DNA of 64,000 nucleotides from Epiperipatus broadwayi. Its lineage: Eukaryota > Animalia > Onychophora. Below are positions 9,022 to 50,247 of this stretch, one piece after another. Position numbers and translations under genes: made by a program. The stretch lies in the NCBI GenBank assembly GCA_028023455.1, contig JAQFVV010000003.1, positions 22,072,001-22,136,000 on the forward strand, in the 5' to 3' direction. Each line of letters opens with the position of its first letter. Positions within the stretch are counted from its first letter, which is position 1. The notes beneath the pieces are model-generated. The model was not told the origin of the DNA and ran no database searches. It saw only the letters and a program-made list of their open reading frames with translations.

Positions 9022-9148
9022 TCTTTAAATTTTTTGCCTATCTGTATTCTATAAATCCCAAATACTTGGGTCTCTGGTTCCAAATTGGCACAAGCAAGTG
9101 TTGTTGATGATTTATTTTCATCATAAATTATGACAGCCTTTCCAAGAA
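9022..9148 (-). CDS. Rsod: SOD-repeat protein, last exon found (end of domain 6 and start of C-terminal region)
   Basis: ttttag| acceptor and |gtaagt donor; 127 nt, phase 1 to phase 2. Reads (I)LGKAVIIYDENKSSTTLACANLEPETQVFGIYRIQIGKKFK and completes the S-I-x-G-R/K-x-x-V-I...LACA motif. Absent from the ORF track. Confidence 0.9.
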
Positions 9149-9218
9149 CTAAAATATATATATATAAAAATATTATTCAAGTAGCAAAAAATGACTATAA
9201 TTTTATGTATATTTACGG

Positions 9219-9231
<13 letters not shown>

Positions 9232-9253
<22 letters not shown>

Positions 9254-9272
9254 ATATGTGGTGTGTGTGTGT
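9232..9272. repeat. (TG)n microsatellite
   Basis: Direct reading of an imperfect TG run. Confidence 0.9.
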
Positions 9273-11242
9273 GCATTTTAAAATGTTCACTGAAAAACAA
9301 TTTGTAAACTCCAAAAAAATATTTATGAATGGATATAATGACAAAATCATCAAATATAAGATTCCATTAGAAAAAAGTTGCAAAGCAAAGCCAAATGTAT
9401 TGATATAGCATTTAACAAATTAAAAGATAGTAATTTTGCTATAATAATGCAACTACTTCAGCTAAATTAGTTGCATGTAGGGTTGTTACTCTTCCAAATT
9501 TATTATGTAAAAGTGAGATGTGGACCCCTTACCATCATGAATTTAAAGACAATTGAAACTTTCATTTAAGGATTCTCTGTAAGATTCTAAAATATAATAG
9601 CAAGATCATAAGATGAATTGATACATTTTCAGTCTGATGGATGTAATTTTTAATCTAACATTGTAAGTCAGACCTTCTTTTTGATGAGAATTTGAAATAA
9701 ATGACTGGCTATAAAAATATTTTTTGATAAGCTTGAACAGTCTACATGAAAAAGGTAGACTTTAAGATGTCAAGATTATATCTAAGATACTCTTATAGTG
9801 TGATAACTTTTATTAGAAGGACATAGTTGAAAGTAAAATACAAAGAGAAGAGCTGCAATTACTTTAGGTAATAAAATCTTTCAGAAATAAAAGTTTGTTG
9901 CAGAAAAAGTTATAAGACAACATTGAAAGTTTCAAATAAATAAATTAAAGTTTTTATTATTTATAATATATCTGGGTTCATTTGTGCATCACTGAATGGT
10001 TTATACAGTCATTACAAAATTCATCTTTAACTTTATTTTTGTCTATGCTAACTGGGGTTTTTTATTGTTGTACCTCAAATTGCCATTCTCTTTTACAAGA
10101 AGCTTTATGAAAAGTCACATGATACAGTAGTGATTTTGTCATTGAACATTTTTGAAGCACAGTTACAATTTTTACTTCTTTTCACAATAGAAGCAATTCA
10201 ATTATAGCAATTCTAATCTTTTTGAATATTAATATAAATAATAAAAACTTTTATGCTTTATGCAATGCAATACTTTATATATCCCAATTGAAAAATTGTG
10301 AGTTTCAACTGTTCAACAATATTCATCAGAGTTTCTTCTAATATTTAAAAAAACTAATACAGAAAAAAAAATTAAGTATTCTTTATGAGTGCAATATATA
10401 AAATATTGTATTGTATAAAGGGCATAAAAGAAGTGTTTTTATTATTTAGATTACTAATAATGTAAACAATGCAGAAAAATTAATGAAAGAAGAACATTTA
10501 ATCTTTTCAGATCTTGAAAAAAGATTGATAAGTAAAAAATGGCAGATAAATCAAGTATCATTTGGGTATCTTTTACAATCTTGGATCCATTTTTCATTTT
10601 TATAATGAAAATTATTTTTCTTTCAAAAGTAACCAACAAACATTTGAAGACTTTTTTGTTTTGCTAAAATTGAGTATATATCTCAATCTTTTTCTCTAAA
10701 TTGTTTTTACTAAGGATAATTCCCCCCTTCTCCCATACCCTCCCATTCTTTGAAAGTTGATAATGACCATAACAAAAATTGTGCCCCATTAGTCTTACTT
10801 ACAAGCATAATCAATGAAATCAAAATAAAAACCTTTGCTCAACAAGTTTCTTTATCTGCTTAGAAGAGCATTAAATAAACTAATCACAATATCAACTGAA
10901 TGGAAGTATATATGACATAAAAGTATTCTTACAGAAACATCAATAATTCTAAGATTTATTTTCTTTAACATGGCTGATAATCAATTCAGATATCTTCAGT
11001 TTTTAAGTCCAATTTTAAGTCCATAATAAGTAGTGACCAAACTTGTCTTTCTTAATAATATAAATACTAAATTGAAATAAACAATTATTATTTTTTTTAT
11101 TTTTTCACGCATTTCTCACTAAACTATTTTTAGATCTAATCAAGCAATAAATTTATTAGAATCTGGAAAATGAATTCATCCATTTGTAAATGAAATGCAT
11201 TCAATAACAGTAAAAACTTAACATTAAAGCAATAATACTAAC

Positions 11243-11390
11243 TTGAAAAATTTCCTGTTAGAGGTGAATTGACATCAGTAAAAATTTTTCTTTGACTTTT
11301 ACCAATAGAAAGTAATTCTGTTCTACCAGATATATCACCAAATTGACATCGCAGAGGTTCAACTACCGAGCATTCAGTAATGTAGTCAGA
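11243..11390 (-). CDS. Rsod: SOD-repeat protein exon (domain 6)
   Basis: ttgcag| acceptor and |gttagt donor; 148 nt, phase 0 to phase 1. Reads SDYITECSVVEPLRCQFGDISGRTELLSIGKSQRKIFTDVNSPLTGNFS (GD-x-S-G and LPL-x-G-type motifs). Confidence 0.92.
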
Positions 11391-13429
11391 CTGCAAATAT
11401 ATAGATATATAATCAGAAATTATCTTTATTATAAAATAAATTGATATATAAAAATAATTATTAATAAATAGCAATAATTAATTTACAGAATTCTGTGAAT
11501 AAGCAATATTGCTCTTCCTCCCCCCCTCCCCTTATTCTATGAAATAGAATTTTAAATTAAAAATAATATAATGTAAAATAGCTTTAACCATCTGAAATTA
11601 TTAAAGTTTGCAACAGAAAACTATTATGGAGGATGGTCAAATGTTCATTGATCGCCTGAATACTATTTGCTCTAAACAGAAAATGTAAAATGTATAAACA
11701 ATATGAATGCAATTAATTAAGCCTAAAAGAGTATTAGAATTAATAAATAACATAAATATTATTAATTAAAAAAGAATATATCTATAATTACAAATAAAGA
11801 TTAAGAAATATGTATTTATGTTCAAAAACAGGGGAAAAATAACTAAGCAGCATAGTATCAGATTAAATAATATTACTTGATCATTATTAATGAGTAAATC
11901 CTTTAAAATAATTTATTCTAGAACCTCAATGTTTAGAGATAACAATTTTATTATGATAAGATATATATATATATATATTGTGTAGATTATAATTTTTAAA
12001 ATGAATGTAGGATAGTCAAAAATGGCAGTTATTTTTGGAAGTTTGTAATAATAAAATATGGTATTTATAATGTATACTACATAGATGAGTGATATAAATT
12101 TTAATGAATCCATTACATTAATAAAATGGATTATATGTATTAATAAATGCATATGCAATATATATTTGTATTTCAGAGAATAGGAATAACATTAAAAAAA
12201 ATGTGATTAGAATGGAGCAAGGCTGACATGTTGCTAAGAGATATGTTAAAAGATGAACATTTGAAGACTTAAGTGGGACCCCAAATGATTCTAAAAGTTT
12301 TAAAATGAGATGAATCAGATAAGGAAGTTTAATGGAATAGTATGAGAAATTAGAAGTATGGATTTGATAATAGTTGAAAATAATGATAATATATTGTAAT
12401 GAAGGTTAAAAGATGAAATGAAATAAGTTTGGTAAAAATTGTGTAGAAACCATCAACAATAAAAAGAATTTCTTATAGTTAAAACAAATTGATCAGGTTA
12501 TGGCTAGTTTTTAAAAGACTCGTACAAAGATATAGAGAAATTTTCTACAAGGTGATTAGTTTGATGAAGTTGCATCATCTTATTGTAATAATTTCTAAAA
12601 TCACAGCTAAAGAGTGAGTGCTTTATAGTTTTTTCATTTATTATTATTTTTAACTCAAATTGAAACCTATAATAAAAGAAACTTGTAAAACAGTTTTGTA
12701 ATCCGTCTCTGACTGCTAATTAACTAAATAAAATTCCTAGTCACTGAAGAAGATGCAGAATAAGAAATATCAATAAGATAGTTTAAATGACACATCAAAA
12801 TCAAAATAAGAAATTACTAAGTTCATGATAGTTTATATCAAACAGAAAGAAAAAAAATCAACTGCTATTGAAAATAGAAAAACATTATACAAATAGATAA
12901 CTACAACCCTTCTGATTTTCTCAGTTTACAATATTTCCTCAGCTCTACAAACCATATTATAAATGTTGAATAAAATAAAAACACTATAAGGCAGGAAACT
13001 ATTATATATTTGAAAGATTCAAGTCATTTTCTCAAGGAACAAATTAAGCAAAAAAGACTGTCATTGTAGGAGTAACTCTCTTCAATTTAATGCAATAGTA
13101 GAATGGTAGATTTAAGAGATAAAGGTTTCTAGATCTGTTCCTATCTGAGAAAAGAATTAAAAGAATTATAAATTAAATAAAAATGTTGTGCTAAACCTGA
13201 CAATTGGATGCTTTAATATCATATAATCTCTTGAATAACTGACCATACAACTATTTTTTTTATTGGATGGGTATAGTAAAAATCAATGTCTTCTAAATGT
13301 TTATGGAAGGTTTGTTTTATCATTATTTAATATCTATTTATTTTATCCAATGCATACATTATGCTATTGGGAACATATATTATCTCAATTAATGCAGGGC
13401 TGTTGATGCCCAAAAGACTCCACTGACTT

Positions 13430-14260
13430 CCAGCTGTATGTAACAGCTTGCCTCATGAGTTTATTCAATGACTCTTCTGGCTGTACCAGATAGCTTGCAT
13501 CAAGTCGGCTCTGGTCTTAGCAGCTTCTAGTCTTATCATCGCCCATGTAAACCTATAGCGTAATGGCTATAATGGAAATTCTCACTGTTAGCAGTACTTT
13601 CAATGGAAAATGTGTATCATCGCTTAAGTTAGACAGACATTCTTTCTTTACCTCTAAAAAAGCTGACCATTTATTGCCAGACTCAGAAAGCATCATTGCC
13701 TATTGGCCCATACTAACCATTAGCTGAGTTTTATCTATATGTTTACCCATTGGTTAGCGGCAATGAATGATCAATCGATCAGATAAGGAATCTGAACTAA
13801 TCCACTTCTGAAGACAAGATGAGATATGACAATATTATAAAATACAAAATTCTGTAACCTGATTATTTTTAAAAAATACAATATAATAGTACGCAACTTA
13901 ACAACTCCAATTTTTCCATTGTTGAATAAAAGCTTTTTTATCTATCAAGAATTTTTAGCTTTATTCTTCCAATTATCCATTTCCATTCTTTCAACTCATT
14001 ATTCCATAATTCTGTTGTATTTGTCTTTTTTTGCAGAAACATTCTCAAATATGAGATTTAAAATCATGTGGTCTACAAACCACATATTCAGACCACATCT
14101 GCTGAGATCTTTGATTATTTTATTTTGACTTGTACAAATTCCAAATTTCCTCTTTATAAGGTCTATCAAAGACCTGTTTAGGAAACTTAAAATAATCAAT
14201 TTTTCAAAAACAGTGTATGAAAATTGGATTATTCTATGCTTCTATAGTTACAGTATGCTG
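13430..14260 (-). mobile_element. Heavily decayed non-LTR RT fragment (RTE/RTE-X-like)
   Basis: NYRSI motif near 14230, followed by RT-like remnants with many stops. Confidence 0.45.
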
Positions 14261-14329
14261 TTATCAGACAATGTGAGAATAAAGCATACAAGAAAGAAAA
14301 TAAACTAAAAAATGGATATGTGTTGTTCA

Positions 14330-16260
14330 ACATATGTAATTGTTCTCTAGCCTATATATTTCTCTTTTGATCCTCCTTAACATTCCAAATATACATCTCA
14401 TAATTCATTATTACGTGTTTTGAATTCTTTGTATTCCTCTTCTGTTTAAGTAACCAAGTCTCATATTCTAATCAAAAAACTAGTAAAGTATATCTTTCTT
14501 TTCAAATACATAACCATATTTCTTTTTAATATTTAGTTATTTTTAGAAAAAAACAATCCGTCCAATTTTCCTGACATAATTATTAACTTCTAATTCATGA
14601 TTGTCAATCTTTAATTTCTTGTTGAGAAAATCCAGTAAACATTACTAGTTTTTTTAGAATTTATTTTTAGTTTTCCTTTCTTACTTTCATCTGATAATTT
14701 ATGTATCATTTCTTGAAGCTTGAAAACATTCCTTGTAAAAACAACTTTATTACTGCAAAATCTAGATGACTTAAATAATCTCCATTTTTCCAGTTTAATT
14801 TATAAAATACTTTCTGAAAAGTTGTGATAAGTTTTAGTGGTATGGAATCTCCCTGCTATGCCCCTCATCATTGCTAATAAATCACTGCTGTTATATTTTA
14901 ATAAATATTTTTTTGAATTTGACATTATTCCGAATCTATATCCTGATGTTCCAAAGCTTTACTCACTGCAGAAATGCTTATAAAACCAAATATTTCTCAT
15001 AATCTATAATACTAACTCACATTCGTGGCCTTTTCTATAACTTCCCTTAATATTTCGATGTAATCTATTGTGATAAAACCACTTTTAAATCCCACATTTT
15101 CTTTGATCTAAATCCAAAATTCTCTGGATACAAGCTATAATGATCTTAATAAAGACTTTGTGTAGAACTTATGGATCTGGAATTTGTAATATTTTCTTTT
15201 TTACTTTTCTTAAATGTCTGTAATTATATTCTTCGTATATTTTTATTCTATTTTTTTACTTGTTTCTTTTAAGTTATCAATAATAATTTAATCATTTCTG
15301 GATCTTTTCCTTTTCATATATTTAATTGCATGTCTCACCTTTTCATTTATAATACTTTAAATTTCAAAAGATACTAATTATAAAAACTAATATGTTGTTG
15401 TTTTATTTTTGGTGATTATTGCTATATAGTTCATAATAAAATCTCCCCCACACTTTTTGACATCTTTCTATTTTTTTTTTGTAATCCTAACATTTTTTGC
15501 CAAAATAACTTTTTTCAATGCTAAGATCCTACATTACACTTTTGAGACTTCTGTTCCCTTCTATCTGAAGTTTTATTTTCTTATATCATTGAATGCTTTT
15601 CAAATCATGTTATAGGATTTCAGATATTCAATTTTTCTAAATGGATTATTTTTTTCTTCATACATTATAAGACTCAACTGAAAATTTCTTATCCATTTAC
15701 ATTAGGTCTGAACTTCTATTGAACTCTGTGAATTCTAGATTAAACATTGGAGTTGTTAGGAATATTGACTGTTAATTATATTTTTTTAAATAGCTTTTGA
15801 CTCTTTAGCTTTGCATTTCACTACACAATGATTATTTCCTGTATTGAATGTATTAAATACATTACATCTTGAAATGCTCTGTATGGTTTGGAGCAAAACA
15901 AAATGGCAGACCCTGAAGTTCAAGATCCAATGATCTAAACCCAACTCTGGCCTTCTGAACATAAAAACCATTTAAATTTTTTTTTAAAAAATTTTGAATT
16001 ATATATTCTTAATTGAAATGTAATCCAGTTCTGTATATCTTCATTTAGATTCTACCACATCCATTTATATTTTACATTATCAAAATCAAAAATTTATAAT
16101 ATATAAATTTTCTTTTTCAGCAAATTCCCTAAGTCTATTCCACTCTCATTTCTTTCTCTATATCCAAATTAATCACAGCCCTTTCATCCTTTCCAATTCT
16201 AGTATTAATATTTCCTTTAACTTGTTTTAGTCTATTCAAAAGTATTTTGTATATCTAAAT
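14330..16260 (-). mobile_element. Decayed RTE-clade LINE (APE end through RT)
   Basis: Remnants such as GDYLSHLDFAVI (compare LNHLRFADDI), and similarity to the copy at 24590-27490. Confidence 0.75.
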
Positions 16261-17088: not shown

Positions 17089-17211
17089 ACTCATTTTTGA
17101 ATAAAATTGATTATTCAGTCCTCCTCCACTCAAACATCGGTAACTACTGTCTTCTAAAAGATTATCTCTACCAATAGCTTGGACCATCATACCCCAGATA
17201 TGATTGTGAGT
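17089..17211 (-). CDS. Rsod: SOD-repeat protein exon (domain 6)
   Basis: ttttcag| acceptor and |gtaagt donor; 123 nt, phase 0 to phase 0. Reads THNHIWGMMVQAIGRDNLLEDSSYRCLSGGGLNNQFYSKMS and joins both neighbouring exons in frame. Confidence 0.92.
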
Positions 17212-17780
17212 CTGAAAAATAAAATCAAGAATATTAAAAAAATCTACTTTCAATGTTTTTTTAATATAATCATCTTTCAGACAGTCATCTTTACTTTCAG
17301 AGCAACTTTATGGCAACAATAAAAATAAATGTCCTAAATTTATTTATTTATAATAAAAAGACAAAAGATTATTGGTTCAAAGATGTAAATATATTGCACA
17401 TATAAATGAAAAATAGCCTTTAAATAGCACACTTCAGAGCAAAAGTCTTCCCTTCACTGAAAATCAGTGAAGAAAATAATATTCAGTAGGCTTGTTAACT
17501 GTTTAATGATAAAGATCTAAGTGATTGGGTTTTTTTTTATCTTCTAGCTAAGATGTATAGATGTGCATAACTAGATGCATATAATATAGAAAATTAAGAT
17601 AGAAACTGGTCAATTAGTAATAGTGAATCACACAATAGTGAGCGAACAACTACACTAAATTACAAGAATAAATTACATTGTGTGCAAATAATTAAAACAA
17701 ATATTTAAAAAAATTAACTAAGAAAGAAAGAAAAATGGCCCAAAACATTCAATTATGACAGATAAATTAATGCCCTGGAT

Positions 17781-17850: not shown

Positions 17851-19764
17851 CTTCTAACATTCAAGCTTTTTATTCTGAATAATAAATCACTTGATTTTTT
17901 AATTAATAAATATTAATTGATTACTTTTCATTAGCAAAGAGGCAGTGGGTTAATAATAAAAAACACTATATACAATAAGATTAAATTTTTCTGATTAAAT
18001 AATGGGAAAACTGCAAAGTTTAATTTGTATAAAATCAAACAAATATCAAGCTAATTATTAATTACATGAAGAACTCTATATTTAAACTCCAAAACTGTGA
18101 CCTTATCAGATACTAGACCAGCTAAATTGAACAAGAGATTCAATTAAAAGCAATTATAAATGGATAACAATCAAAATCTTGTAGAATTTTACAAAATATG
18201 TAGTCCTCAAAGTATTATGCAGGAAGGGTTGCTTTGTACAGTTTATGCAGTAAAAGAATTAGAATAAAGAGCTAAAGATTCATTGACTGCTTTCCAGTGG
18301 GAAAAAGTAAACAAATATCCCAGTTTTGATCATTTAAATTGAACCATTGTGTTTAATTTGATAAGTGAGTGCTCTGATTTCACATGATTTTTGCAGAAAC
18401 ATCCTATGTTTATTTTTATTTTTACTGTTATTTTTTAAATCTAATATGTTCAGAGCCAGATTTATATCTGGCAGCTGACAATTACATAAATAAATTTAAT
18501 AAATAATTTCAAGAGTTTATTTAATCTGAATAATAGGATTATTAAATCAACTGGCAGCTTGCTAATTGACAACAATATCAATTTTGATCACATAAGAATT
18601 CATATCTCAAAAGATAAGTATTATACATATGTAGCTTTACAACTATTAACAATGTCACACAATTTCCACATTTTTGAACTTCCATAATACATTGGTTATT
18701 TTAATTATCATTCAAGCAAGCATTTTATTGCTCTTACACATCTCGTGAGTTAGTAGAGTTATATTATGCTGAAACTCTTTTCTACTATATTTGTTTACAA
18801 CTGCACAATTTTCACTCTGCATCTAGAATCTACTTTCAACTTAATGCTTCTAACTACTCCTTTTTCATATTACTACTTATCAGACATCATTAGAAGTTCT
18901 GCGGGCATTTTTATTAACTTTGCTAATTTGCATGATGTTCGACTTTATTTTAAGAGCAAATCAATACATTGCTTCTTTTTAGAAGACTTTTTTTTTCTGC
19001 ATATTATTATTTCTAGAGTGTTTCAGCACTGCCTATATAGATTAGCCTACATACACATACATGTATACAACTTTATTAATAAAAATATTTACAAACTAGC
19101 CAGTATACAATAATACTTCCCCTTCACTCTAGTAATAAGCAGAAATAATCTTGTTATCTTTTTAGTATCCACTTCTCTCTAACAGTCCTTGTTGAGGTTA
19201 ATACTCTCTTTTCCTGCTCTATACTCTTCTCTTATTGTTTACCATTTAATTCTAATGCTTTTTTTGAACCGGAGAGTTATCTGGTGCTTGTAAATAAGTG
19301 TTAGTAGTAACATCAGTCTTATTATCCTTAACTGTACATGAAGTAGTAACTATATCTTCTAATATTCCATTTTTCTGTTTCCTTATATAGTTAACATGGC
19401 ATCTTAAAATTCTCTCATCTTTCAATTTTATTTTATGTATTTGGATAAAAATTATTCTATTTATTATTCCTAGTAGCTGTTTTTTTTTCTAATTACATCT
19501 CTTATCTATACTTTGGTCTACTTTAAGTCTGACTAATTCTAAATTTTCATCTTTTTTTTTTTTTGCTTTATCCAGTATTAAACTATATAAGTATGTTCTC
19601 ACATGTAATTTCATTAATAATTCCACAGGTGTTTTCTTTGTAACAGAACTGGGTATAAAATGTTAGTAAAACATCAAAGTTGTAATTTCTTCATGAAAAT
19701 CAGCATATTCCTGTTTATTTAACATAGTTTTCAGCTGTTGAACTGCCTTCTTCACAATTCCATT

Positions 19765-20205
19765 TGTATTTTACCAGTTCTTACTTATGGATCTGAGACT
19801 TGGGCACTTAATAGAAGAGCAATACAGAGACTTCAGACCACTCAAAAGAGTATGGAGAGATGTATGTTGGGAATAACAAGAAGAGATCGAAAACGCAATG
19901 TATGGGTAAGACAACAAACATGTGTTACTGACCTTATTGAAAAAATTAAAAGATTGAAATGGAGTTGGGCTGGACATATTGCTAGAAGAGATGATAATAG
20001 ATGGACAATTGAAATTTTAAACTGGATTCCAAGAGATTGTAAAAGACCCAGAAAGAGACCACATGTGAGATGGATGGATGAAATAAGAAAATGTGCAGGG
20101 GTGTTGTGGAGAAGAGAAGCTAAAGATCAGAGAAGATGGATTAAACTTGGAGAGACCTTCATCCTGCAGTGGATTGATAATGGTTGATGATGATGATGAT
20201 GATGA
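19765..20205 (+). mobile_element. 5'-truncated RTE LINE 3' end with (GAT)n tail, inserted in the gypsy integrase
   Basis: Uninterrupted frame ILPVLTYGSETW...LKWSWAGHIARR...RWMDEI...FILQW ending at TGA 20185-20187, then a (TGA)n tail. Confidence 0.95.
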
Positions 20206-24589: not shown

Positions 24590-27490
24590 TTTCAATAATT
24601 AAGATCCATTGCAGGCTGAAGAACTCTCCAATTTTAATCCAGTTTCTCCCATCTCTAGCCTCATTTAACATCATACCAGTAAACTTTCTTATTTCATTTA
24701 TTCATTTCACATATGGTCTCTTTTTAAGTGTTTTACAATTTCTTGGAATCTGATTTAAGATTTTAATCGTCCATCTATTATCATCTCTATTTCAACCTCT
24801 TAATTTTATCAATGATATCAGTAATAATTGTTTGTGTCACTATATATTTAGTTTTTAATCTCTTCTTGTTACTTCTAACATATATCTCTCCATACTTTGT
24901 TGAGTGTTCATCTCTGAAATGCTTTTCTGTTAAGTGTCCAAGGCTTCAGATCTTTAAGTAAAAATTTAAATCTAATAAAAATCTTCAGCTTCAAACACAT
25001 AAGCATATTTCTTTTTAATATTGTTATTATTACATAAGCACTCCATCTAATTTTAATCCTATGATTATTTCAGTCTTTTTAAATATTTATCTTCAGTCCT
25101 ATTTTCCTATTCTCATCTAATATTTCTTGCAACATTTCCTGAAGCTCAGAAGTATTATTTGAAAAAACAATTATATCAACTTCAAACTCTAGATGTCTTA
25201 AATAATTTCCATGTATTATTTGAAAAAACAACCACATCAACTTCAAAATCTAGATGTCTTAAATAATTTCCATTTATTTTTATTCTCTTAGCTTTCCATT
25301 TTAATCCACAAAATATTTCTTATAAAACTTCAGTGAATCATTCTGGAGATGTAGAATCACTCTGTCATATATCCTTCTCAATATTTTTCTTAGTATTACT
25401 ATGTAATCTAATCAATATTCTTTAAAATATGACAATATTTTGGGTCTATATCTTAATGATCCAATGCTTTAATCACCATAGAAATTCTTATAGAATCGAA
25501 TACCTTTTCATAATTGAATCCAAAGCATAATGGCAACTTATATTCATTGGTCTCTTTATAACTTTTCTCAATATTCAGATATAATCCACTGTGCTAAAAA
25601 CCCTTTTAAATCTAGCATGTTCTTTTAGTTGGTTAAAATCTAAAGTTCACTGTAAATAAATTGTAATTATCATGGTAAAAATTTTGTATGAACTGATAAA
25701 AAACTGCACTTTCTAATATTTTCTTTATCATCTTTTTAAAATACCAATATTACTACTACACATTATCAATATTCTGGTATATCTTGATATATAACTTTGT
25801 CAATAATTTTTTTTCTTTCTTTGCCCACTTCTTTTAAGATATCAATTATAATTCCATCAATACTGGGAGTTTTTCCCTTTTTTAGATTTTATTGCATATC
25901 TTCTTCAATTAAAATATTGAGCAATTCAGAAACTATAGCAATTATAAAAAATGATCACTTATCTTGTTCTTTATCACTATAAAATTCCTCAGAGATCTCT
26001 TCCAAACATTTCAAGATGTCATTTTTCTTTTTTAGTAATACAGTAGTTTCCATCTTAACTACCAATACCAAGATATATTGTTTTACACTTTTGGTACCTT
26101 TATTCTCTTCTATAGCATTCCTTGTAAATTCATAATTATATTTTCTTATATTGCTATTATCACTTTTTCAAGATATTCAATTCTTTTTTAACAATCACTT
26201 CTAAAAATTCTCACATTACTCTTTTGTATCATACATTGTCTTATTTCAGTAGAAAATTTATTAGCAAATTACTGCTTTTTTTGCTGTAGTTTTTAATAAT
26301 CTAATCTTCTTATTAATTTCGTTCAAATCTGAAACTTCTTCAAAATCTTAATATTTTAAAACAATTTGCAAGTTTTAATTGAAATTCATTGGAATGTTTC
26401 TGAAAAGTTAGGAATATCAATTATGAACTGTTTATTTTAATAATTTTTGTCTCATTAATTTTGCATTAATATATATCTTACATATCGCCAATGAGCATTC
26501 TCCTGAAATACATATTTTCCATTCGTCAAAATATAATCCAATTTTGCTGTATCTTTATTGGATGCTGGAGAGTCCATTTCCATTTAGCATTTTTCTCAAA
26601 GAAAGAATTCATAATATAAAGTTTTTATTTTTCTATGAACTCCACAAATCTATGTTCTCTTTCATTTTAATCATCCTAACCAAATTTATCCACAGCACTT
26701 TCATCATCCAATTATTTGGTCTATCAAAAGCATTTTGTATATCTGTATAAAAATCCTTTACTTTTATTTATAACAATGAGATCTTCCATTAAGATGAGTA
26801 ACTAATCTTAGTACTCTGTCTGATACATTATCAATCTCCACAATGTTTTCATCGACTTTTTATTTACAATGAATCTTATTCCATTTGGGTTTCCAATATG
26901 TGTGCCTTTGTAGTAAAGCACATGTCTATTTTTAAATCAATTGTCTCATCTTTTCTTGTAACTCCACAAAATCCAACAATATCCGTTCATACAATCTTCA
27001 TTCACTTAAAAGGGATCTGCAGTTATCAGTACCTGAATAAAAAGTCATCATCAAATGACAGCCTGAAGCCACCAATTATTGTCTTGCCTGGTGACTTTAC
27101 AGCCTCCTGGAAAATAGGGTCATAATTTAATTTTGTCTGTCATGATTGTAAATATTTATTTTTAAAAAAATTTCATTTTTATACACATTTTCAATAAAAC
27201 CCAATCGATATTTCAGTTAAGAACTATATAGCACAACTGAAAAAAAAGACCTCGGTGTTTTTTGATCTTCAACATAGAAATAAAAAACTGATAAACTTGC
27301 CATGCTCATTGGATCGTGTTGATGAGCAGCCCAACCATGCTCATATACTCTACATGAATAATCATATAGAATAATAACAACTACAACAATAAGAACATAT
27401 GAAGTAGACATTAGAAAATTTGCACTGCTTGATTTATTTATGGCCTCAAAGAAGAATTAAAGGATCTCCTTTCAGTTATCAGAAAACTCC
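24590..27490 (-). mobile_element. Near-full-length decayed RTE LINE
   Basis: 5' UTR matches 7630-8010, followed by APE and RT remnants and a C-terminal WIKIGEFFSLQW near 24610. Contains an internal ~60-bp tandem duplication at 25154-25274. Confidence 0.85.
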
Positions 27491-32369: not shown

Positions 32370-32456
32370 CGTTTCATTTGATCTATTCCCAGCACGTGTC
32401 AGGTTTACTTCAATCGTTGTATCACTGTAAGTACCATCACCAAACACAAGTTGCAT
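32370..32456 (-). CDS. Rsod: SOD-repeat protein exon (domain 6)
   Basis: tttgtag| acceptor and |gtataa donor; 87 nt, phase 0 to phase 0. Reads MQLVFGDGTYSDTTIEVNLTRAGNRSNET, bridging ...GYITM to THNH... in frame. Too short for the ORF track. Confidence 0.88.
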
Positions 32457-38449: not shown

Positions 38450-40541
38450 CATTGTAATATAACCAGACACAAAGATTTCTTCGAAAACAGCTCGAGCATA
38501 TATAACTGATGCATTGATATAACTTTTTGTATCATATTCTACAGTGGCACAGATCCAACGCTCATTCTGTTCTTCTTTATGAATTAAAAATGATCTTCCA
38601 ATGATACTGTATGGTCCTTGAAGAGGCAAAATACTATCTTGGTAAGAAGCTTTAAATGAATTCATACCTGTCATTCGACCATATTTGCCACTCAAATCTC
38701 CCAATTCATAAAGATCATCAGATCCAACAGTTGGAGGTGGGCTTTCCTTAGGGTTAACTCCAAATGGATTATAATGATCTAAAACTCCTTCACGAGAACA
38801 AGGATTGTCCAAACTCAGGGGAACAGATAATTCATGAATATGGTAACCACCAGCTGTTTCATTTAAATTAGAAATATCTATAAATGACTGTGTAGGATCA
38901 AATAATGTACTCTGCTCAAAGCGACTTTGTCCTTTAATTTCAAAGTTAGTCCATTCTTTGACTATAGCTCGAATTGGATGAAACAGATTAATATCACCAC
39001 ATGCTAATCTCATATTTGATTGTTTGTAAATAACAAGAGATTTTCCAATAATTGACATAGGTCCAGATAAAGCTATTTCAGAATCAATAAAAAAATGTCT
39101 GGTATTATTTGCATTTTTTGAATATGATATATTAATTCTACCATGTTTTCCTGACAAATCTCCCAATGGACAATTATAGGAATTTAAAGGGTTACAATTC
39201 ATATTGTTTTGTATGTTATATGGATTATAAGACTCACCTACACTTACACAAGCATCTTTATATTTGTAAAAATCATTTCCAATTCTATGCATATGTATTT
39301 TGAATTCATGATCACTGGAAGAGGGGGAACCATCAGAATAACTTAAATATATAAATATAGAAGTTTCAAAATTAGGATCATCCTTTTCTTGTCTCAAATA
39401 AATATATCCTACAACTGGAGTATAAAAGATGACCCGAGCAGTTATTAATGGTTTGTTATTGATAATGTTTGTGCAGTATACAATATTTGATTTCAAAAAT
39501 AATGATCTTCCTATAATATTATTAAGTCCAAACAGAGGAAGATTATAATCTGTAAATGAGGATGAATAAACATTCCCAGAAAAAGATATATTCAGTCTTC
39601 CACTTAAGTGACCAATAGCATATTGATCTTCAGTTTTAAAATTGAGAGATGAATTAAGATTTCTATCAATATTAAATGGGTTCCAAATATATTCCATTTT
39701 AAATGAAGAACATGGCAAGTCTTCAGCCTTTAATCGAGATAAAATTGGAAATTGAAGAATGTAAACATTTTCTACAGCTCGTGTATCTGATGAAGCTGCC
39801 AAATTAATTTTAATAGAAGTTGGATCAAATGGTGACTTTTGTTCAAAAACAAAAGAACCTTTGAGATTTCTTTGGCTAAAAGTTGCTTTGGCACTTTTGG
39901 GACTAACATAACGAATTTCTCCACAAGATCGTTTCCCATCCTGTAAATCTATAACAACAAATAACGAGTATCCAATGCTGATACCTTCAAGAGGTAAATT
40001 AGTATCCATAAAAACCATTCTGCTAGAACTATGTGTTTTTCCAATAACAATATTACCATGTTTTCGATATAAATTGCCCATTTTACAGTTTTTATGATTA
40101 GTGCTTGTACACAAAGAATCGTCTATTTCATCAGGATCATATAATAAAACTAATTTTTTACAATCATCAAAGAGTAAATCACGCGTGTCATCCAGCTTTG
40201 TAGCAACTAAAATTCTCCAAGATAAAGTATTTAACTGAGTATTCCCATCTATATAAGAAAGATCTGTGTAAATATTAGCTTCAGCTGATCCTTCAACTTG
40301 CCGGAAAACTATATCACCTCTCACAGGTGACATAAATTTAGCAATAGCAGTTTTTATAGAAAATGGTGATGTTATAGTAGAACAAAATTTCAGATTTGTA
40401 TCAGTCTTCTGAAATAATATTGAGCGACCTAAAACACTAGTAACTCCTTTCAGTTTCAATTTGTCATCTGTAATATTTTTTACTTCCCCAGTAAAAGTTA
40501 GCTGACCCAACCTTGATGATAAATCGCCATTATTTTCATAT
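38450..40541 (-). CDS. Rsod: SOD-repeat protein, 2092-nt exon (second half of domain 1 to start of domain 6)
   Basis: Core of ORF 38372-40549, trimmed to gtttag| acceptor (phase 2) and ATG|gtaaga donor (phase 0). Repeated GDLSGK-x-G, S-I-I-G-R-S and YNP motifs, with GYHIH and DHYNP in domain 5. Confidence 0.95.
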
Positions 40542-41897: not shown

Positions 41898-42885
41898 TAA
41901 AATATAATGTTCTTTTCACATTAAAATCAATCAAAATACTCTCCTTTTTTCTTTCCAAAAACTTTATTTTTTCCATCACCATAATATATACATTTACTTG
42001 TTTACCACATCCAATGTTTCAACCACCTTATTTGTAGTCATTTTCAAGGATCTACAAAATTCATATTATATTTTTATAATTAAAAATAAAATAAAAACAC
42101 AAAAATGCATCTACGCCTATCATAAAAAAACAATAACATTTTCCTTTCATTTATCCATACCTCCTTTTTTATATATACTACATTATATATACACTACCCT
42201 TACTTGCTTCTTTCCTCTTCAAACTTCCTTTTTACTTATACCTTTCCTTTTTTTAAAAAAACTAACCACAAATATATTTTCCTTTTCTTTTTATACCCCT
42301 TAAGTACTTACTTAAAAACAATACCTTTACAAACAAATTTATTTTTTACTTAAAATATATCATTTATATAATTTATTCTATTCAGAACAGGTTTATTTCT
42401 TTTTATATATAAACTCTCCTTTACCATTCTCTCTTTATACAATCTTACTTTCTCCAACATTGGTGCCGATATAGTGCGCGCTTGGCACCATTTTGAATTT
42501 TAATTTTTTATGTTAATTTCTTTTCCCACCATTTTTTGAAACTACGTGCTTCTAGTCAATGTCATTTAGTGCATGTATGTGTCAGCAGTGTTTTGGAGGT
42601 ATTTTAAAATTCAAAATAGCACCAAGCACGTACTATATTGGCACTCCAACATTTTTTATGTTAAAATCTATATGCCCAAATTTCGCAAATTTCTTACTAT
42701 GTATATTAACATTTGAATTTTTATTACACAAATGTTGTTTCAACCTTGTTTCTAATTTATTATTTCTTGTACCATTATATGACATATTCTTATTTTTTTT
42801 TTTACGATCTAAACACTCAATTCTATAAATACCATTCATATATATTTTCAACATCCCTATTTCTTGTTTCCTTTATCACATTATA
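41898..42885 (-). mobile_element. Penelope-like element 3' fragment, left arm of inverted pair
   Basis: GIY-YIG-like GIYRIECLDRK...SYNGTRNNKLETRLKQH...GHIDF (ORF 42633-42854) and a degenerate hammerhead at 42009-42051. Confidence 0.8.
42462..42645. mobile_element. 184-bp MITE with GG-initiated TIRs and 8-bp TSD (Merlin-like)
   Basis: ~40-bp TIRs GGTGCC(G/A)ATATAGT... and exact TSD ccaacatt at 42454-42461 and 42646-42653. Absent from the right Penelope arm. Confidence 0.8.
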
Positions 42886-43003
42886 AAAAAAAAGAAAAAA
42901 AAAGGAATTTATTAGTAGTTATAAGGTATCAAAAAATACTTTTTTTAATTATTAAAAAGATAATGAAGGATATAAATAGGAATTATGGAAAGAAGGTCAG
43001 CAC

Positions 43004-43080
43004 AACTGCCTTACAAGCAGTTGTCCCAGATTAGCAGGTTCACGTCCCGGCCGATGCTGTGACACATGAAAAAAAAAAAA
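43004..43080 (+). mobile_element. tRNA-derived SINE (family 1), 5'-truncated copy
   Basis: Shares GGTTCxCGTCCCGGCCGATGCTxTGACAC plus A-tail with the 35015-35125 copy. Confidence 0.8.
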
Positions 43081-43104
43081 CAGTATATAAAAGGAAGTAT
43101 AATT

Positions 43105-43870
43105 TAGGTGATGTAATAAAGAAAACAAGAAATAGGAATGTTGAAAATATGAATGGTATTTATAAAATTGAGTATTTAGATTGCAAAAAAGATGAGAATG
43201 TTGAGTATTTAGATTGTAAAAAAAATAAGAAGAATGTATCATACATTGATACAACATAGAATAAATTATAAACAAGGTTAAAATACTATTTGAGTAATAA
43301 AAAATTCAAATGTTAACATACACCGTAAGGAATATGGGCATATAGATTTTAAGATAAAAATGTTAGAGAAAGTAAGATTATATAGAGAGAGAATGGTAAA
43401 GGAGAGTTTATATATGAAAAGAAATAAACCTGTTCTAAATAGAATAAATTATATAAATGATATATTTTAAGTAAAAAATAAATTTGTATGTAATGGTATT
43501 ATTTTTAAGTAAGTACTTAAGGGATATATATTTGTGATTAGTTTTTTAAAAAAAAAAAATGTATAAGGAAAAAGGAAAAAGTTTGAAGAGGAAAGAAGCA
43601 AGTAAGTGTAATGTATATATAATGTAGTATATATAGAAAAAGAAGTATGGATAAATGAAAGGAAAATGTTATTGTTTTTTTATGATAAGGATAGATGCAT
43701 TTTTGTGTTTTTATTTTATTTTTAATTATAAAAATATAATATGTATTTTGTAGATCCTTGAAAATGACTACAAATAAGGTGATCAAAACGTTGGATGTGG
43801 TAAACAAGTAAATGAATATATATGGTGATAGAAAATGATTGGTTTTAATGTGAAAAGGGCATTATATTTT
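43105..43870 (+). mobile_element. Penelope-like element 3' fragment, right arm of inverted pair
   Basis: GIYKIEYLDCKK...SYIDTT GIY-YIG remnant, reverse complement of the left arm, degenerate hammerhead at 43754-43796. Confidence 0.8.
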
Positions 43871-46800
43871 ATAAGTCATATATATTTTTGAAAGAAAAAA
43901 AGGTGTGTGCAGTTGTTAAAAAGTTTTTAATGGTGGTAATAATAAGTAGAATAAGCTAAAATCCAGTTATAAAAGTCTGGCTTGTGCTTCCATTCAGTGC
44001 CTACTAATTTTATTCTTTGTTTATCTTGTGACTAATAGAATTAAAAAAGAGGTGAGTACTAACAAAAGCTAGTTGTAAAAAGTTTGACATCACTGCCATC
44101 TATTACCTATTAACTTAATTTTTACTTGTCTTGTGACTTGTAGAGTTGAAAAAAAAGAAGTCATTACTAGTAATAAATTTATATAACAAGAACAATCCAT
44201 TTATATCAGCAAACTAGAATATCAACAATAACAAAATAAGCAGAAACTTAACAAATAAAGTTATTTGTCCATAGGAAAATTGAATTAACTAGACAATAGA
44301 ATACTACTAATTGTATGATAACACTTGATCCATTAGTGATACCTTATTATCTCTTTTAAATTGTTTCACAAAGTAAAGCAACCATTTGCTTTATGTCAAT
44401 TATATGCAGCCACCTTGCAAGCAAGCAGTTGGTTGCAGACGGTTGTTGCGGGTTTGCCTTTCAGCCGATACTATGACATATGAAGAAAAAAATTAAACAA
44501 TCATCAAAAAATTCTAGCTATCCAAAACCCAGTCATGCAAGATATCTTAGATGGAAAATAGCATGTCAAGATTTTGTGATGAGTAAAAAAGAGCTCAATT
44601 TGCACATAAAATATTGCTTAGCATGATAACAAAATGATGAATATAAGAGCTAGAGATTCTAAATTGATTCTTAGCAGAGTAAAACAAAAAAAACTCAGTT
44701 TGATCAGGCAAGTGAAATTGTGCAATCTGCCTGTTGGGTGATTAATCAATGCTTGATCTCCTAAGCAATTAACCATATGATTATTTTTTAAGACAGTATT
44801 GAGAGTCATGACTGGCTACTTTAATCAAAAAAAAGTGAAAAGCCATTCTTCATTGATTCAAGATTCATTTTCACCACACCCACAAACCACACCCAGTTTG
44901 ATACATGATACAAATTTCTCATATTCATAATGTTGCACTGTTGATTTAAAATATCATCTTAAGACCCAACTGATGTAAGAACTTCTAAAGATATGATTTC
45001 TTTTTAAAATCTTGCATGTTTTGTTCTATTTGAGATCTTGAAACCACATAAAACTCTTTGACCATAAATAAGTGAAAATACAATTCTTAATACATCTGTT
45101 GCGTCAAATGGATGTGGAAACAATTGGCATTCATCTGTACCTAATTGGTCACAATTTGAAGGGTGACATTTGTAAAAACTTTGGGCTTCTTTTCATTTGA
45201 ATTTCAAACAGTTTTCTTAGGCTCAACAGTAACATTGCTCTATCCCAATGAAAAAGACCTCTATAAAACAAATGTGTTTAAATATGCAGTCAATTGATTT
45301 GAATAACAAGATAAAAATAAAAGGTAAAATAATCGTTTGACAACTTAAATCTTTATGCCAATATTATGCAAGCTTGAGGTAATAGATTTTCATATGCTTC
45401 ATTATTTAATAAATACAATATACTCACTTTGTATTTTCTTTGATCAATGCACACACTCTGGCTTAGAAAAATTAATATATTAATATATTTAACATAATTG
45501 TAAAAATCTATATCTTTTTTTTTTCTACAATTTGTCTACAGTAAATGATATCTAAAAAGACTCAGAGGAAAATGGTGTCATATTATTTTCTAACTTTATT
45601 AAGACTTTTATTCTTTTCATTATTACAAGAGTAAATCTTTTCATCATACTCTACAGCCTTCTATTTATAAACTTTAGTAATCAATGAATATTAGATGGTA
45701 AGTTATAATGCTTCATCCCTATACTGTTTTAAAGCTTATAGTAGGTAGCTTTAAGTAGAATAAAAAAATCCGCTCTTGGAACATATCACTAAGCATCTGA
45801 CAAAATTATATGGTATTATTGTTAGTACAAATTGCCTATGATTGGAATAAAATTGAAATATCAAATAGCTATAGAAATTAAGTTGATATCAGATCTGTAC
45901 TATTATACAAAAGAACAGTATAGAGGAGTAAAAGATAGCCACTAGTTGCATAAATATTTTAAATCCAGATTTGATTATATTTCTTACTGAAGAAGACAAA
46001 AGCAGAAAACCAGTCTGGGGATAAGGATATTATAGCAATATTATCTGGGGGCCATTAATTACTCAAGTTTACAATACATAGTTCTAGAGTAAAGTGAAGA
46101 AGAGATACATTCTTGAAAGCATATGAGAAAGTCATTTGATACTATTGTTTGTAATATTAATAATTTACTGAATATTCATTACAACAGTGCCTAAACTCGG
46201 GCTATACACATGGCTCCAACAAAAGGAAAACTAGTTTCATTATTGTAATACAAAACAAGTACAGAGTAAACTTATCTTTATGATTAACATTGACTAGTTC
46301 TCAGTTATAGGATATTAATATGATATTTGCAGTGAAAGAGTAGGCATTTTAAGGAATTTTACAAAATTACTTGCATCTGGGATCCTTTATGGAGGAGTCC
46401 AATATAGTTGTCAGTATGGCCCCTAGTCTCACATCTACATTGTGAAATGAATTGAATATCATTTTTCCTAGAAAGTGAACAATTTCCATTTTCTAAATTT
46501 AGATATCCAGTTTAATTTGTATCTAAATTTTCAACACAAGAGTGCACTGAAATCAACTACTTTATTGTTATGAGTTTCTGAATTAAAATGATAATTTGTT
46601 TTAATTGCTGTTGGCAGCCATATTTGTCCTTTCTTTTTAAACTAAATTATAAATTTTCAATCTGCATAATTTTCAATTTATCATAATGAATTAAGAGATC
46701 ATGTGATTTTACTTTTAAAATGTTAAGCTATTGAGATTCATAATGATGATCAACGCATTTATTCTTTTATAAATGAAAATATTTAAAATTTGATTAAATA

Positions 46801-49560
46801 AATACTAAAAAATTTAATTATAAGTTTAATTATTTTCAAAAGTGGCTTTCTTCATGTAGTTTGGCACAATGTTATGGGGATAAACTCTTGAACTAAAAGT
46901 TCAATCAATTCTAGACTAAACAAAAAAAAAAGCCCTGTCTAATCAATTAAATAGAGCTATCATACTCAACTTTGCTGCTTTGAAGTTCCTAAAACCTAAT
47001 GTCATTGGTCGAATATACAAAAGTACTATTTTATATCAAATGTTCATCTTTATCTAAACAAATTTATGTATAAAAAAGTGAACCAGATCTTTGAATTACA
47101 GATAATTCTCTCCTTAAAAGATCTGTTCCATGACTTCTTGCATACATTTGACTTTTAGCAAATAAAAAAATAAATGCTATAATACATCATAGCATGAAAT
47201 ACATGAAAACTGAGAGCTATATTGATTAAGAGTATTATAAATTTTTGGCAAAGCCTGGATTTAGAAAGTTAGTGAATGCAATATTAAAATTCCACTGTGA
47301 TGATTCAATATAATATTCACAAATTACTTAATCAAATCTTAGTTTAAAATGCATTACTATTCCTACCTTCCAGTTGAATGATATTTAACTTTTGAATTTC
47401 AGTAGTTTGTCATCACTATTTTGCAGCTTTATTTGTGTTTTATCTTGTGTTGGTGCAAACACAGCTATTACTGTTAGCTATAATCAATTTAACCAAAGAT
47501 TCAAAGTTTCCTAAATCAACTTTCAATAAAATAAAAAATGTTTGATTATTTGGTCAACTGAATTCCCCAGTGACTCTCTAAGTATTACATGACCTCTATT
47601 AAACACTTGCCATGTTGCATTTATCTTGATCCTTCATATGTCGTATGACTTCCTGGGTAACTGTAACTAATGATATGACATATGAATTATATTTTTTTAT
47701 TTATATCAATTTCTTGAAAGCATTTTAAGAAAGTGAAATAAAAATACTTAGAAAAAATTATATTTCTTCCTATATTCTTTTTTTTTTTTTCCAGTTTTAA
47801 TCTTGTCAGCAAAATATCACATGACTTACTTTGCTCTCATTAGAAATGCGCTTTTAGAAGTAATTCACTTTATTTATTCTATTCTAGAACTATTTATTAT
47901 CATGATTTAAAAGATTTAAAACAATATACTGGAAGTATAAGTGAAAATATTTTGAAACTCTTCCCTAACAAAGACCAATTCCCCCAAAACTAATCTACAA
48001 ATGTGGATTGTGACATTATCACTAAGCATCTATTAATTGTCCATGCTTTCAATAGATCGCTATGGAGAAGAATAAATGGAATGAATTACTATTCCTAGAT
48101 GTATAGAATTTGTGTATATATAATTAATTTTGGTGATCTATGTAAGCAGTTTTTCAAACTTCGAAAGCAATTTTACTAAGGTAAATACTTGCTAGCAATC
48201 AATGAGGATTAAATTTAAATACATCCTATTTATTCATTCTTTCAATTGTGCAATATTTTTTTTAAAATAAGCTGTTTCTTTGTAGCATAAAAGCAATGAT
48301 TATTTTTATCTGATAGAGTAGTCAATGCTGAAGCTTAAGATCTATGGACTTTGACTCCAGCTCCGTCTCTTCTCCCACTTCTTACGAACTCTCCAAGTTT
48401 GATGAATTACTTGATATTTTCAATGTCACAACTTAATGAGAGATGCAATGAGAAAAAATCATGTTAAGAATAACAGAAGCATAAAAAGCGATGTTTTCCA
48501 TATAACTTATTTCCTCCCTTTTCTCTCAATTCAAATATAACATATTTGATGATAATGAATGTGAACAAAGATGTATATTCCTGAGACACAAAACAAAATT
48601 AACATTAAAGCCAATCTTTTATGGTACTCAGTCTTGACTTATTAACAGTAGAGATATTCATTATTAGAATTTTTATCAAATGAACCTTTTCTTGATGGTT
48701 AATGATAACTCTGAAGTCTATACAACTTAAAAATTCTTTAGTGAAAATAATTAATCATTGCCTTGAGTTTTAGAAATTCTGTTAACAAGCATTTCAGACA
48801 ACTAGACAGATTTCTTATTTATTTTCAGTTGAAATTAAATCCAAAAAACATTTTTTTCACTAACAAGCAATTCTTTTCTGGAGGTAACTGCAAGGTACTC
48901 ATGTCAGAACTGACTGATTCCCATTGCAAACAAATCTCCAATGAGTTTAGTTTTCATCAGCTACTGTATCATGGAGTCAAATACTCAGAAACAAGTTGTT
49001 TTACTATTATGTCAACCACTCACCAGAATGCTACTCTTTTTACTGAGACAAATATTCATCATTAAGCCCATTTGATAATAAATCTACTCCTCATCAATAG
49101 CCTACTTTAACATTAAACCAATTACTCATAAAGCAACCTTATCAACATTTTATGATCAAACTACTCTTTCATTATATTAATTATCTTTCTTGGTCAATTC
49201 CATTTTTTTTACTTTTGAGTCAATTTTTCATTATTAAATCACTGCTTATCAATAAACTTCTCAATTATTGTGCTAAATCTTTAACGGTAGAAGCTACAAA
49301 CTCCATTTTACTCAGGTTCAAATAATTGCAGAAATATACAAGTGAATATGTGTGCTGTGTGCATGTAAAGATGGCTTACATATAATAAAACTTATAAAGA
49401 TTTATAAAATAAACAAACATACATAATAGACAATTCAGAGATGCAAAAAGTAAATAAGAAAAAAAAAATAGAAAACTTGCAACATAAACAGATATAATAA
49501 TAATGGTAAAATACAATCCAAGATTAATAAATACATAGATAAATATTTTGCAAAACTTAC

Positions 49561-49759
49561 AAAGGACCAATGATATTGTCTTCACAACCTCTTAATGAAC
49601 CATATATAATGGGAAATTTATGAATCTCCCATTTAAAAGTTCCAGAAATGCTTAAATTAACTGTAATGTGTACAGGATTGGTTGCTTCTGCCTGGTAGAA
49701 TCTAACCTCTCCTCGCACTCCATTGATAGAAATAGGAGCAATAAGAACTTCTTCACCAC
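49561..49759 (-). CDS. Rsod: SOD-repeat protein exon (first half of domain 1)
   Basis: CTAAC branch point and tgtag| acceptor; |gtaagt donor; 199 nt, phase 1 to phase 2. Reads GEEVLIAPISINGVRGEVRFYQ...KWEIHKFPIIYGSLRGCEDNIIGP, and TT|A joins it to YENNGDL in the large exon. Confidence 0.92.
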
Positions 49760-49809
49760 CTACATTTAAAATAAATAAATATATTATGTTAGCATATATA
49801 TATACACAG

Positions 49810-49968
49810 ACTAATAGATTACAACCAATTGCTACAATTTCAATCATGCTACCTGTGTTTAAAAATCCAAGACTGAATCACATACCTTAGATATGTGATT
49901 CAGTCTTGGATTTTTAAATACAAGTAATTCATTTGAAACAGTAACAATTGGTTGTATTCTATTACTGT
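49810..49968. repeat. Intronic palindrome / foldback with perfect 27-bp core stem
   Basis: 49858-49884 is the exact reverse complement of 49892-49918 around a 7-nt loop. The outer arms pair imperfectly. Confidence 0.95.
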
Positions 49969-50170
49969 ATGAGTTTCATTTAGCTTTATGCATAGGCATT
50001 AAATGTTCATTTTATAATTTTTCATGTATTTGGAAAAATATTCTCAACTTGTGATTTTAAAAATGTTAGGATTTAGCATAGATACTGTTTCTGAGAGAAT
50101 AGGTATATAAAATCCTATTTAAAAAAACAACAACATGCTTCATTATGTATTAATTAAAATAAAACTTTAC

Positions 50171-50247
50171 CATCCTTTAACCCAGAAATAATTAAAAGAG
50201 AATCCTAATAGAAGTAAAATGAGTGAATAAATAGATAAGGATTCCAT
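50171..50247 (-). CDS. Rsod: Candidate signal-peptide exon of the SOD-repeat gene (one base out of frame as given)
   Basis: ttttag|tgag ATG start, hydrophobic MESLSIYSLILLLLGFS..., ATG|gtaaag donor. The direct splice to 49759 gives TGG TGG TGA, whereas removing one base restores the frame. Confidence 0.55.

Follow-up and report, generated by a model that had tools for sequence, protein, structure and literature searches.

The 64,000-nucleotide stretch of the Epiperipatus broadwayi (Onychophora) genome analyzed here (assembly GCA_028023455.1, contig JAQFVV010000003.1, positions 22,072,001 to 22,136,000; hereafter "the window") carries on its minus strand, between ~9 and 50 kb, one multi-exon gene of the copper-only superoxide dismutase (SOD) repeat protein (CSRP) family. 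Judged from its sequence, the locus is an ordinary CSRP-family ortholog. We consider it quite probable that the gene is intact and that its product, comprising six SOD barrels (D1 to D6) with a single SOD5-type copper site in D5, would be exported, loaded with copper, and active in superoxide dismutation, with the other five barrels in a structural role. The initial annotation of the window described the six-domain architecture correctly, but did not recognize that such proteins are already published as CSRP, Rsod, cusr, or SOD4.

It is known that CSRPs are proteins of ~1000 amino acids that in most animals have six repeats, separated by five to nine residues, and that differ in how many copper sites they bear (Peterson and Culotta 2026, PMC13017621). 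The same authors list the synonyms Rsod in insects, cusr in fish, SOD4 in Xenopus, and SOD6 in Bombyx. Copper is always absent from the first one or two repeats; the oyster protein retains sites in R3–R6, those of Bombyx and the tardigrade retain none, and the copper-less members are expressed and similarly folded (PMC13017621). For the oyster (Crassostrea) protein, SOD activity was measured on the recombinant product (Tan et al. 2025, PMC12217663), and in the frog, sod4 is required for tail regeneration (PMC10416458). Onychophora are missing both from the CSRP species table of PMC13017621 and from the phyla listed by Tan et al. (PMC12217663).

Evidence for family membership

Pfam detects Sod_Cu in the core exon, and a word-index protein search with this exon returned 64 proteins, nearly all 950–1150 amino acids long and all with the Sod_Cu domain (PF00080), from mites, a scorpion, a chiton, bivalves, echinoderms, amphioxus, crustaceans, a springtail, a tardigrade, and many fishes (in which the protein is named cusr). 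The best matches to the large exon, which encodes D2 to D5 and parts of both flanking domains, are from mites, the chiton, and the scorpion at 35%–38% identity. Against mite CSRPs, this exon aligns at 38% identity with 96% coverage (E = 1e-156), and across the mite, mollusc, echinoderm, amphioxus, and fish cusr proteins the E values run from 1e-156 to 1e-85 with coverage of 90%–99%. The exon pieces, each aligned separately as a fragment, are collinear with 42 full-length orthologs, with no notable gaps or overlaps. It should be noted that the searches, alignments, and structure models were run exon by exon or domain by domain, rather than on the joined protein, and that D1 and D6 were defined by homology to ortholog domains after cutting the ortholog alignment at the domain borders of the window gene.

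Members of the family are recognized by at least four tandem SOD-like β-barrels with very short linkers, by homology over the full length to named CSRP or cusr proteins, and by disulfide cysteines in each repeat, as well as by a secretion signal at the N terminus and a glycosylphosphatidylinositol (GPI) signal or transmembrane tail at the C terminus. For the two termini, the window gene offers a putative leader that is hydrophobic and aligns with that of a paralog, and a C-terminal module that was followed as far as a splice donor. Here, D2 to D5 lie contiguously within one exon, homology to the named proteins extends over the full length, and both cysteine columns are filled in each of the six domains, for a total of 12 cysteines (a count from sequence alone). 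The claim that the protein has six SOD-fold domains is thus upheld by collinearity with the 42 orthologs, by models of D2 and D5 that match SOD5, and, for D1 and D6, by homology to the orthologs.

A single complete copper site

Metal-site residues are given in SOD1 numbering (copper ligands H46, H48, H63, and H120; also H80, D83, and R143) and were read from full-length and domain-level alignments; small shifts exist between the two, and the full-length reading was used. Only D5 (38531..38980, minus strand, as for all coordinates of the gene) carries what is, by sequence, a complete copper-only, SOD5-type site: four histidines (H H H H), the Glu/Asp pair and arginine (E D R), a short loop VII, and the cysteine pair. 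Its motifs are GYHIH, DHYNP, YELGDLSGK, and LIH-KEEQNE-R, with six residues between the last histidine and the arginine. When aligned with Candida SOD5 (4n3t), D5 matches from end to end, including H-x-H, H-F-N-P, E110/D113, the last histidine, a loop of equal length, the arginine, and the cysteines; Cu/Zn SODs align with it only as far as the last histidine. YELGD of D5 falls on HEVGD of 4n3t and there is no histidine between DHYNP and YELGD, so the zinc site is missing. The AlphaFold model of D5 (pLDDT 96, from the predicted local distance difference test) agrees with this, in that its top four matches in the Protein Data Bank (PDB) are all SOD5 (template modeling [TM] score 0.78–0.80, root mean square deviation [rmsd] 2.5), compared with a TM score of ~0.70 and an rmsd of 4.4 for Cu/Zn SODs. 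Sequence and model together therefore place in D5 all of the features that define the SOD5 type, namely, four copper histidines, Glu/Asp without a zinc site, and a truncated loop VII.

None of the other domains has the four histidines, and on their residues these five are SOD-folded barrels rather than SOD enzymes. D1, whose WEIH motif is encoded in the exon at 49.7 kb, retains one of the four (E H - F at the copper positions; - D K at H80, D83, and R143). D2 (39905..40363) retains none (WRIL) and has an extra Cys-x8-Cys loop, and D3 (39458..39904) likewise retains none (YILQ and IWNP; Y L I -), with the Glu replaced by Ala and the Asp by His (A H -). D4 (38981..39457) has one of the four (FKIH; K H S Y, with SYNP and VIY), keeps the arginine (P D R), and has a Cys-x8-Cys loop, and D6 has none (G M L Y; Q D T), its IWGMM motif being encoded by exon 17211..17089. 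The motifs WRIL, YILQ, FKIH, and GYHIH, of D2 to D5, all lie within the single large exon, and every motif quoted in the initial annotation was found in the minus-strand translation.

The proposal that D5 is the sole domain with a complete copper-only site is borne out by its HHHH/EDR residues, by the alignment with SOD5, and by the structural match. Two of the checks suggested by the initial annotation bear on the SOD folds. In a Pfam scan of separate domains, Sod_Cu was above threshold only in D5 (40.9 bits) and D4 (32.6 bits); D3 scored below it (15.6 bits), and no hit was returned for D2 or for the exon pieces of D1 and D6 taken separately. Structure prediction gave SOD5 as the best match not only for D5 but also for D2 (pLDDT 90.5, TM score 0.62).

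Copper sites in orthologs and in a paralog

Among the 42 orthologs, an intact copper site is found in D5 of 34, D3 of 31, D4 of 22, and D6 of 11, and never in D1 or D2. Retention in D5 only is not unique to the window gene, because six of the 42 orthologs share this state, including those of the dust mites Dermatophagoides pteronyssinus and Blomia. Four orthologs have no intact site at all.

The genome contains a second CSRP gene, 36% identical to the first (C6269:4215707-4217713, with its first coding exon at L008:385-677). As in the window gene, D2 to D5 of this paralog occupy one uninterrupted open exon. In a tree of D2 to D5, the two onychophoran genes pair with each other on a long branch beside the tardigrade, a placement for which long-branch attraction is possible.

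Alternation of two barrel types

The alternation of two barrel types, already suggested by the initial annotation, is real as far as sequence comparison can tell, with D1, D3, and D5 of one type (A) and D2, D4, and D6 of the other (B). It appears to be an old two-domain module that is family-wide and not specific to the window gene. B-type barrels are longer and have an extra Cys-x(6-10)-Cys loop directly before the GD motif. This loop is present in D2 of 26, D4 of 42, and D6 of 41 of the 42 orthologs, and in none of them in D1, D3, or D5.

The branch that separates odd from even domains was recovered in four trees. In a quick analysis of 89 rows under LG+C20 with posterior mean site frequencies (PMSF), its support by the SH-like approximate likelihood ratio test (SH-aLRT) is 93 and its length 0.53. 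Support is 94 in a set of 80 rows that adds Nematostella, a sponge, two other four-repeat proteins, and two single-domain SODs. An IQ-TREE LG+F+G4 fast search gave 96.9, and FastTree gave 0.977. The domains did, then, split into odd and even groups (support 93–98), as the earlier proposal of alternation had predicted. The four-repeat proteins of Nematostella and the sponge alternate as well, and their repeats group with D1, D2, D3, and D6. All of these trees are of the "quick," "fast," or FastTree kind, and they are unrooted, as the three short single-domain relatives of D5 are too few to serve as an outgroup. A profile comparison with hhalign points the same way. The best partner of each domain always has the same parity (D3-D5, 387; D4-D6, 337; D2-D4, 235; D1-D3, 132), and cross-parity pairs score 73–201.

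One result counts against this division, in that an approximately unbiased (AU) test on fast searches does not reject a grouping of D1 with D2+D4 (p = 0.26). The membership of D1 in the A type is for this reason the weakest part of the alternation. The AU values of this test are themselves weak evidence, given that the fast constrained searches were under-optimized (constraints that the free tree satisfies scored 26–48 log-likelihood units [lnL] worse). The periodicity is not described in PMC13017621 or PMC12217663, which mention only "amplification" of a copper-only SOD.

A Cys-x8-Cys loop was also seen in repeat 1 of the Nematostella (P0049) and sponge (P0064) proteins and in a single-domain SOD resembling the copper-only type (P0067). 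Judging from these sequences, the loop may be an ancestral feature that A-type domains have lost, rather than a novelty of the B type.

Order of the duplications

The initial annotation went further and proposed triplication of a two-domain unit. The odd/even split supports the unit, but the order of an in-register triplication was not established. Such a triplication predicts (D1,(D3,D5)) and (D2,(D4,D6)). D3+D5 is recovered throughout, and the pairing of the B domains depends on the model used. LG+C20 PMSF joins D2 with D4 (97–98) and D3 with D5 (87–96) and leaves D6 outside, and the LG+F+G4 fast tree also has D2+D4 (90.7). These groupings are in line with an internal, out-of-register duplication, by which a four-repeat chain D1-(D2-D3)-D6 became D1-(D2-D3)-(D4-D5)-D6. 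Two further observations favor this history: D2 and D4 share an L-x-Y-x-D-G segment after strand 3 that D6 lacks, and the four repeats of the Nematostella and sponge proteins are those that group with D1, D2, D3, and D6. However, FastTree pairs D4 with D6 (0.965), and under LG+G4 the tree constrained to D4+D6 improves on the quick free tree by 13 lnL. Even under PMSF the D4+D6 tree is only 8.8 lnL worse (p-AU 0.29), and the AU tests reject neither D4+D6 nor D2+D4. In addition, D4-D6 is the second-strongest profile pair (337 vs. 235 for D2-D4), and D2 sits on a long branch, which makes the rooting of the B clade fragile. We regard an internal duplication as possible, with rather more to doubt than to believe in it. 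In-register (A-B) triplication is compatible with the sequence data and favored by raw similarity, and is neither rejected nor proven.

More broadly, every metazoan CSRP, whether of sponge, sea anemone, or vertebrate, might descend from one ancient two-domain A-B module, with repeat number having changed as whole A-B (or B-A) pairs were gained or lost through unequal recombination; for this we see about equal grounds for acceptance and for doubt. The description of the two parts is just as evenly balanced: the A barrel would be short, without the extra loop, and have (F/W)P after H-x-H, and the B barrel would be longer and carry the Cys-x(6-10)-Cys loop. If true, the ancient module would explain the order in which copper sites were lost, with D1 and D2 always without them, then D6, D4, D3, and, last, D5.

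Gene model

Exons were located using tblastn with orthologs, by inspection of the DNA, and by alignment of each exon as a fragment to the 42 orthologs. In the best model, the first coding exon is 49561..49847, with an ATG at 49847, a hydrophobic leader, the N-terminal part of D1 (WEIH, KFP), and a phase-2 donor (TT|GTAAGT). After a 9-kb intron between 49561 and 40541 comes the large exon (38450..40541; 2092 nt, or 697 codons plus 1 nt), which holds the end of D1, all of D2 to D5, and the first two strands of D6. The remainder of D6 is dispersed over four exons. The first, of 29 codons (32370..32456), covers the region of strands 2–3, is phase 0/0 with canonical sites, and corresponds to columns 1004–1042 of the ortholog D6. 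It is followed by a 41-codon exon (17089..17211) in which IWGMMVQ replaces W-H-x-H and LNNQ replaces HYNP, and then by 11243..11390, which encodes the Cys-x7-Cys loop and QFGDISG and matches orthologs by tblastn at up to E = 1e-9. The last in the window, 9022..9148, encodes the final strands of D6 (VIIY..., LACANL) and the start of the C-terminal module. All junctions from 49561 to 9022 are GT/AG with matching phases (2/1, 0/0, 0/0, 0/0, 1/2) and without stops. As was claimed initially, several exons are not visible in the open reading frame (ORF) track, for which they are too short.

Both ends of the gene as originally drawn need revision. Position 9022 is not the end of the coding sequence but a splice donor (GA|GTAAGT), and at least two more exons lie beyond the window. 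The C-terminal module exons were not found inside the 64-kb window. A profile of the non-SOD C-terminal module of the orthologs located one on the same strand downstream, at C3:22058289-22058417 (C3 being the window's own contig), and a further exon on that strand, at C3:22045593..22045501, extends the module to its invariant cysteine and ends at a donor. Their distances beyond the start of the window are 13.6 and 26.4 kb. The two bases that remain at the 9022 donor are exactly those required by the acceptor of the former, 22.6 kb downstream of 9022. The gene thus reaches at least 26.5 kb beyond the start of the window and has at least nine coding exons, more than 1027 residues, and introns of up to 22.6 kb; the eight exons found span ~76 kb. 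Giant introns and a high repeat load are known features of the E. broadwayi genome (PMC9985152).

At the other end, the gene start had been placed at 50247, on the basis of a putative signal-peptide exon at 50171..50247 on the minus strand (MESLSIYSLILLLLGFSF...). This exon encodes a convincing-looking leader, but its possible donors are of phase 0 or 2 only and the acceptor at 49760 needs phase 1. A scan of 49.8–64 kb for an in-phase upstream leader exon (methionine, hydrophobic stretch, and phase-1 donor) yielded one poor candidate, at 56420. In the paralog, the methionine, leader, and first half of D1 lie in a single exon with a phase-2 donor at the same position as in the window gene, and BLASTP aligns the N termini of the two genes through the leader. 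Because the exon layout is the same, the leaders align, and 50171..50247 is out of phase, we took the ATG at 49847 as the likely translation start, and 50171..50247 is probably outside the coding sequence. It is important to note that the assembly is Nanopore-based and that a one-base error could rescue the 50171..50247 exon.

Proposed mode of action and alternatives

As read from the exons and orthologs, the chain would begin with the hydrophobic leader, continue with six tandem SOD-fold barrels joined by very short linkers, and end in the conserved non-SOD C-terminal module. By analogy with relatives, the leader would export the protein, which would probably be attached to the cell surface. 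Extracellular copper would load D5, as in related proteins, and the single open copper site, given its residues, would dismutate extracellular superoxide. The five copper-less barrels would be folded structural partners; the scaffolding or adhesion role that the initial annotation proposed for them is speculative and resembles a suggestion of the family's reviewers (PMC13017621).

Several points weigh against parts of this scheme. The putative leader from the ATG at 49847 is 31 residues long and without a basic n-region. In relatives the last exon encodes a GPI or transmembrane tail; here that exon, and with it any hydrophobic or GPI tail, was not located in the module search on the contig, and membrane anchoring is for that reason proposed by analogy only. 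Copper binding and activity of D5 are read from residues and a metal-free model. Within this genome the paralog has no intact copper site in D2 to D5, and the tardigrade and Bombyx CSRPs have no copper sites either (PMC13017621); therefore the family works without catalysis too.

A rival view is that the window protein may itself act without catalysis, its D5 site being a relic or used for copper binding or sensing, and its barrels having structural, recognition, or chaperone-like functions at the cell surface. The same role has been proposed for the copper-less tardigrade and Bombyx CSRPs and for oyster dominin, and copper-less CSRPs are expressed and fold alike (PMC13017621). Five of the six barrels here lack a site, as do D2 to D5 of the paralog and all barrels of four of the 42 orthologs, and sites were lost progressively in panarthropods. 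However, D5 retains every catalytic residue, including the arginine and the E/D pair, and only catalysis is known to need those; moreover, no other domain of the family is intact as often as D5 (34 of 42 orthologs), a sign that the site has been under selection. We find a purely noncatalytic protein unlikely. Far less probable still is that the locus is a decaying or unexpressed pseudogene copy. The very long, transposon-filled introns and the unlocated last exon could be read in this way, but eight open, in-phase exons with canonical splice sites over ~76 kb, all 12 disulfide cysteines, and the complete D5 site speak against such a copy. An intact gene with one enzymatic barrel is the reading that we prefer.

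Other features of the window

The window is very AT-rich (GC 23%–33%). The 9-kb intron contains two ~300-bp copies of one repeat in opposite orientation (41998-42303, plus strand, and 43538-43807, minus strand), ~1.2 kb apart, whose spurious ORFs give near-identical peptides; they probably represent either one transposon whose ends are inverted or two insertions. Fragments of non-long-terminal-repeat (non-LTR) retrotransposons occur at 60559-60849 (minus), 19738-20187 (plus), 8068-8598 (plus), and 25079-25246 (minus). The one at 60.6 kb matches RVT_1 at 36 bits, that at 8.1 kb has a weak endonuclease match, and the ORFs at 19.7 and 25.1 kb resemble the C terminus of reverse transcriptase. In gene orientation, a (TG/CA)n microsatellite (9190-9300) immediately precedes the acceptor of exon 9148..9022. 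At 63118-63459 (plus) there is an open frame of 113 codons with a somewhat elevated GC content (33%) that is not repeat-like in composition and is possibly an exon of a neighboring gene; its match to DUF3919 is below threshold (16.5 bits).

Significance and comparison with known systems

The six-repeat architecture and the variable copper sites are already described for the CSRP family, and current knowledge is not overturned. What is new is modest: an onychophoran record and its copper-less paralog, a gene model that has been corrected and extended, and evidence for a family-wide A/B periodicity. The two genes are added to a recently named, poorly understood family of extracellular SOD-like proteins. 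In its number of copper sites, the window gene is intermediate between molluscs, with four, and tardigrades and the silk moth, with none; its pattern of one surviving copper-bearing barrel recurs in dust mites. The single surviving site makes D5 the natural domain for asking whether panarthropod CSRPs remain enzymes. If it holds, the A/B alternation amounts to a simple building rule and offers a handle on repeat number (12 in Capsaspora, six in most animals, and four in cnidarians).

The window gene shares with the CSRP family in general its length (~1000 amino acids), the six SOD-like barrels with very short linkers, a disulfide in every barrel, the lack of a zinc site, the short loop VII, copper-less first two repeats, and a C-terminal module after the last barrel. 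It differs in that only repeat 5 is intact (vs. R3–R6 in the oyster and none in the tardigrade and Bombyx), in the size of the gene (more than 76 kb, introns of up to 22.6 kb), and in coming from an onychophoran. Dust-mite CSRPs (D. pteronyssinus P0006 and Blomia tropicalis P0013) have the same D5-only copper ligands and the same order of six domains; however, identity to them is 35%–36%, and in the tree of D2 to D5 the window gene sits with its paralog on a separate long branch beside the tardigrade. With Candida albicans SOD5 (PDB 4n3t, 5cu9), D5 shares the four copper histidines, E110/D113, the arginine, the disulfide, the truncated loop VII, and the fold, although SOD5 is a single-domain GPI protein and D5 is the fifth of six domains in a chain, at ~25% identity. 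The Crassostrea CSRP (PMC12217663) belongs to the same family, and the activity of the recombinant protein supports an enzymatic reading for copper-bearing repeats, with the difference that it has four predicted copper sites (R3–R6), whereas the window gene has one.

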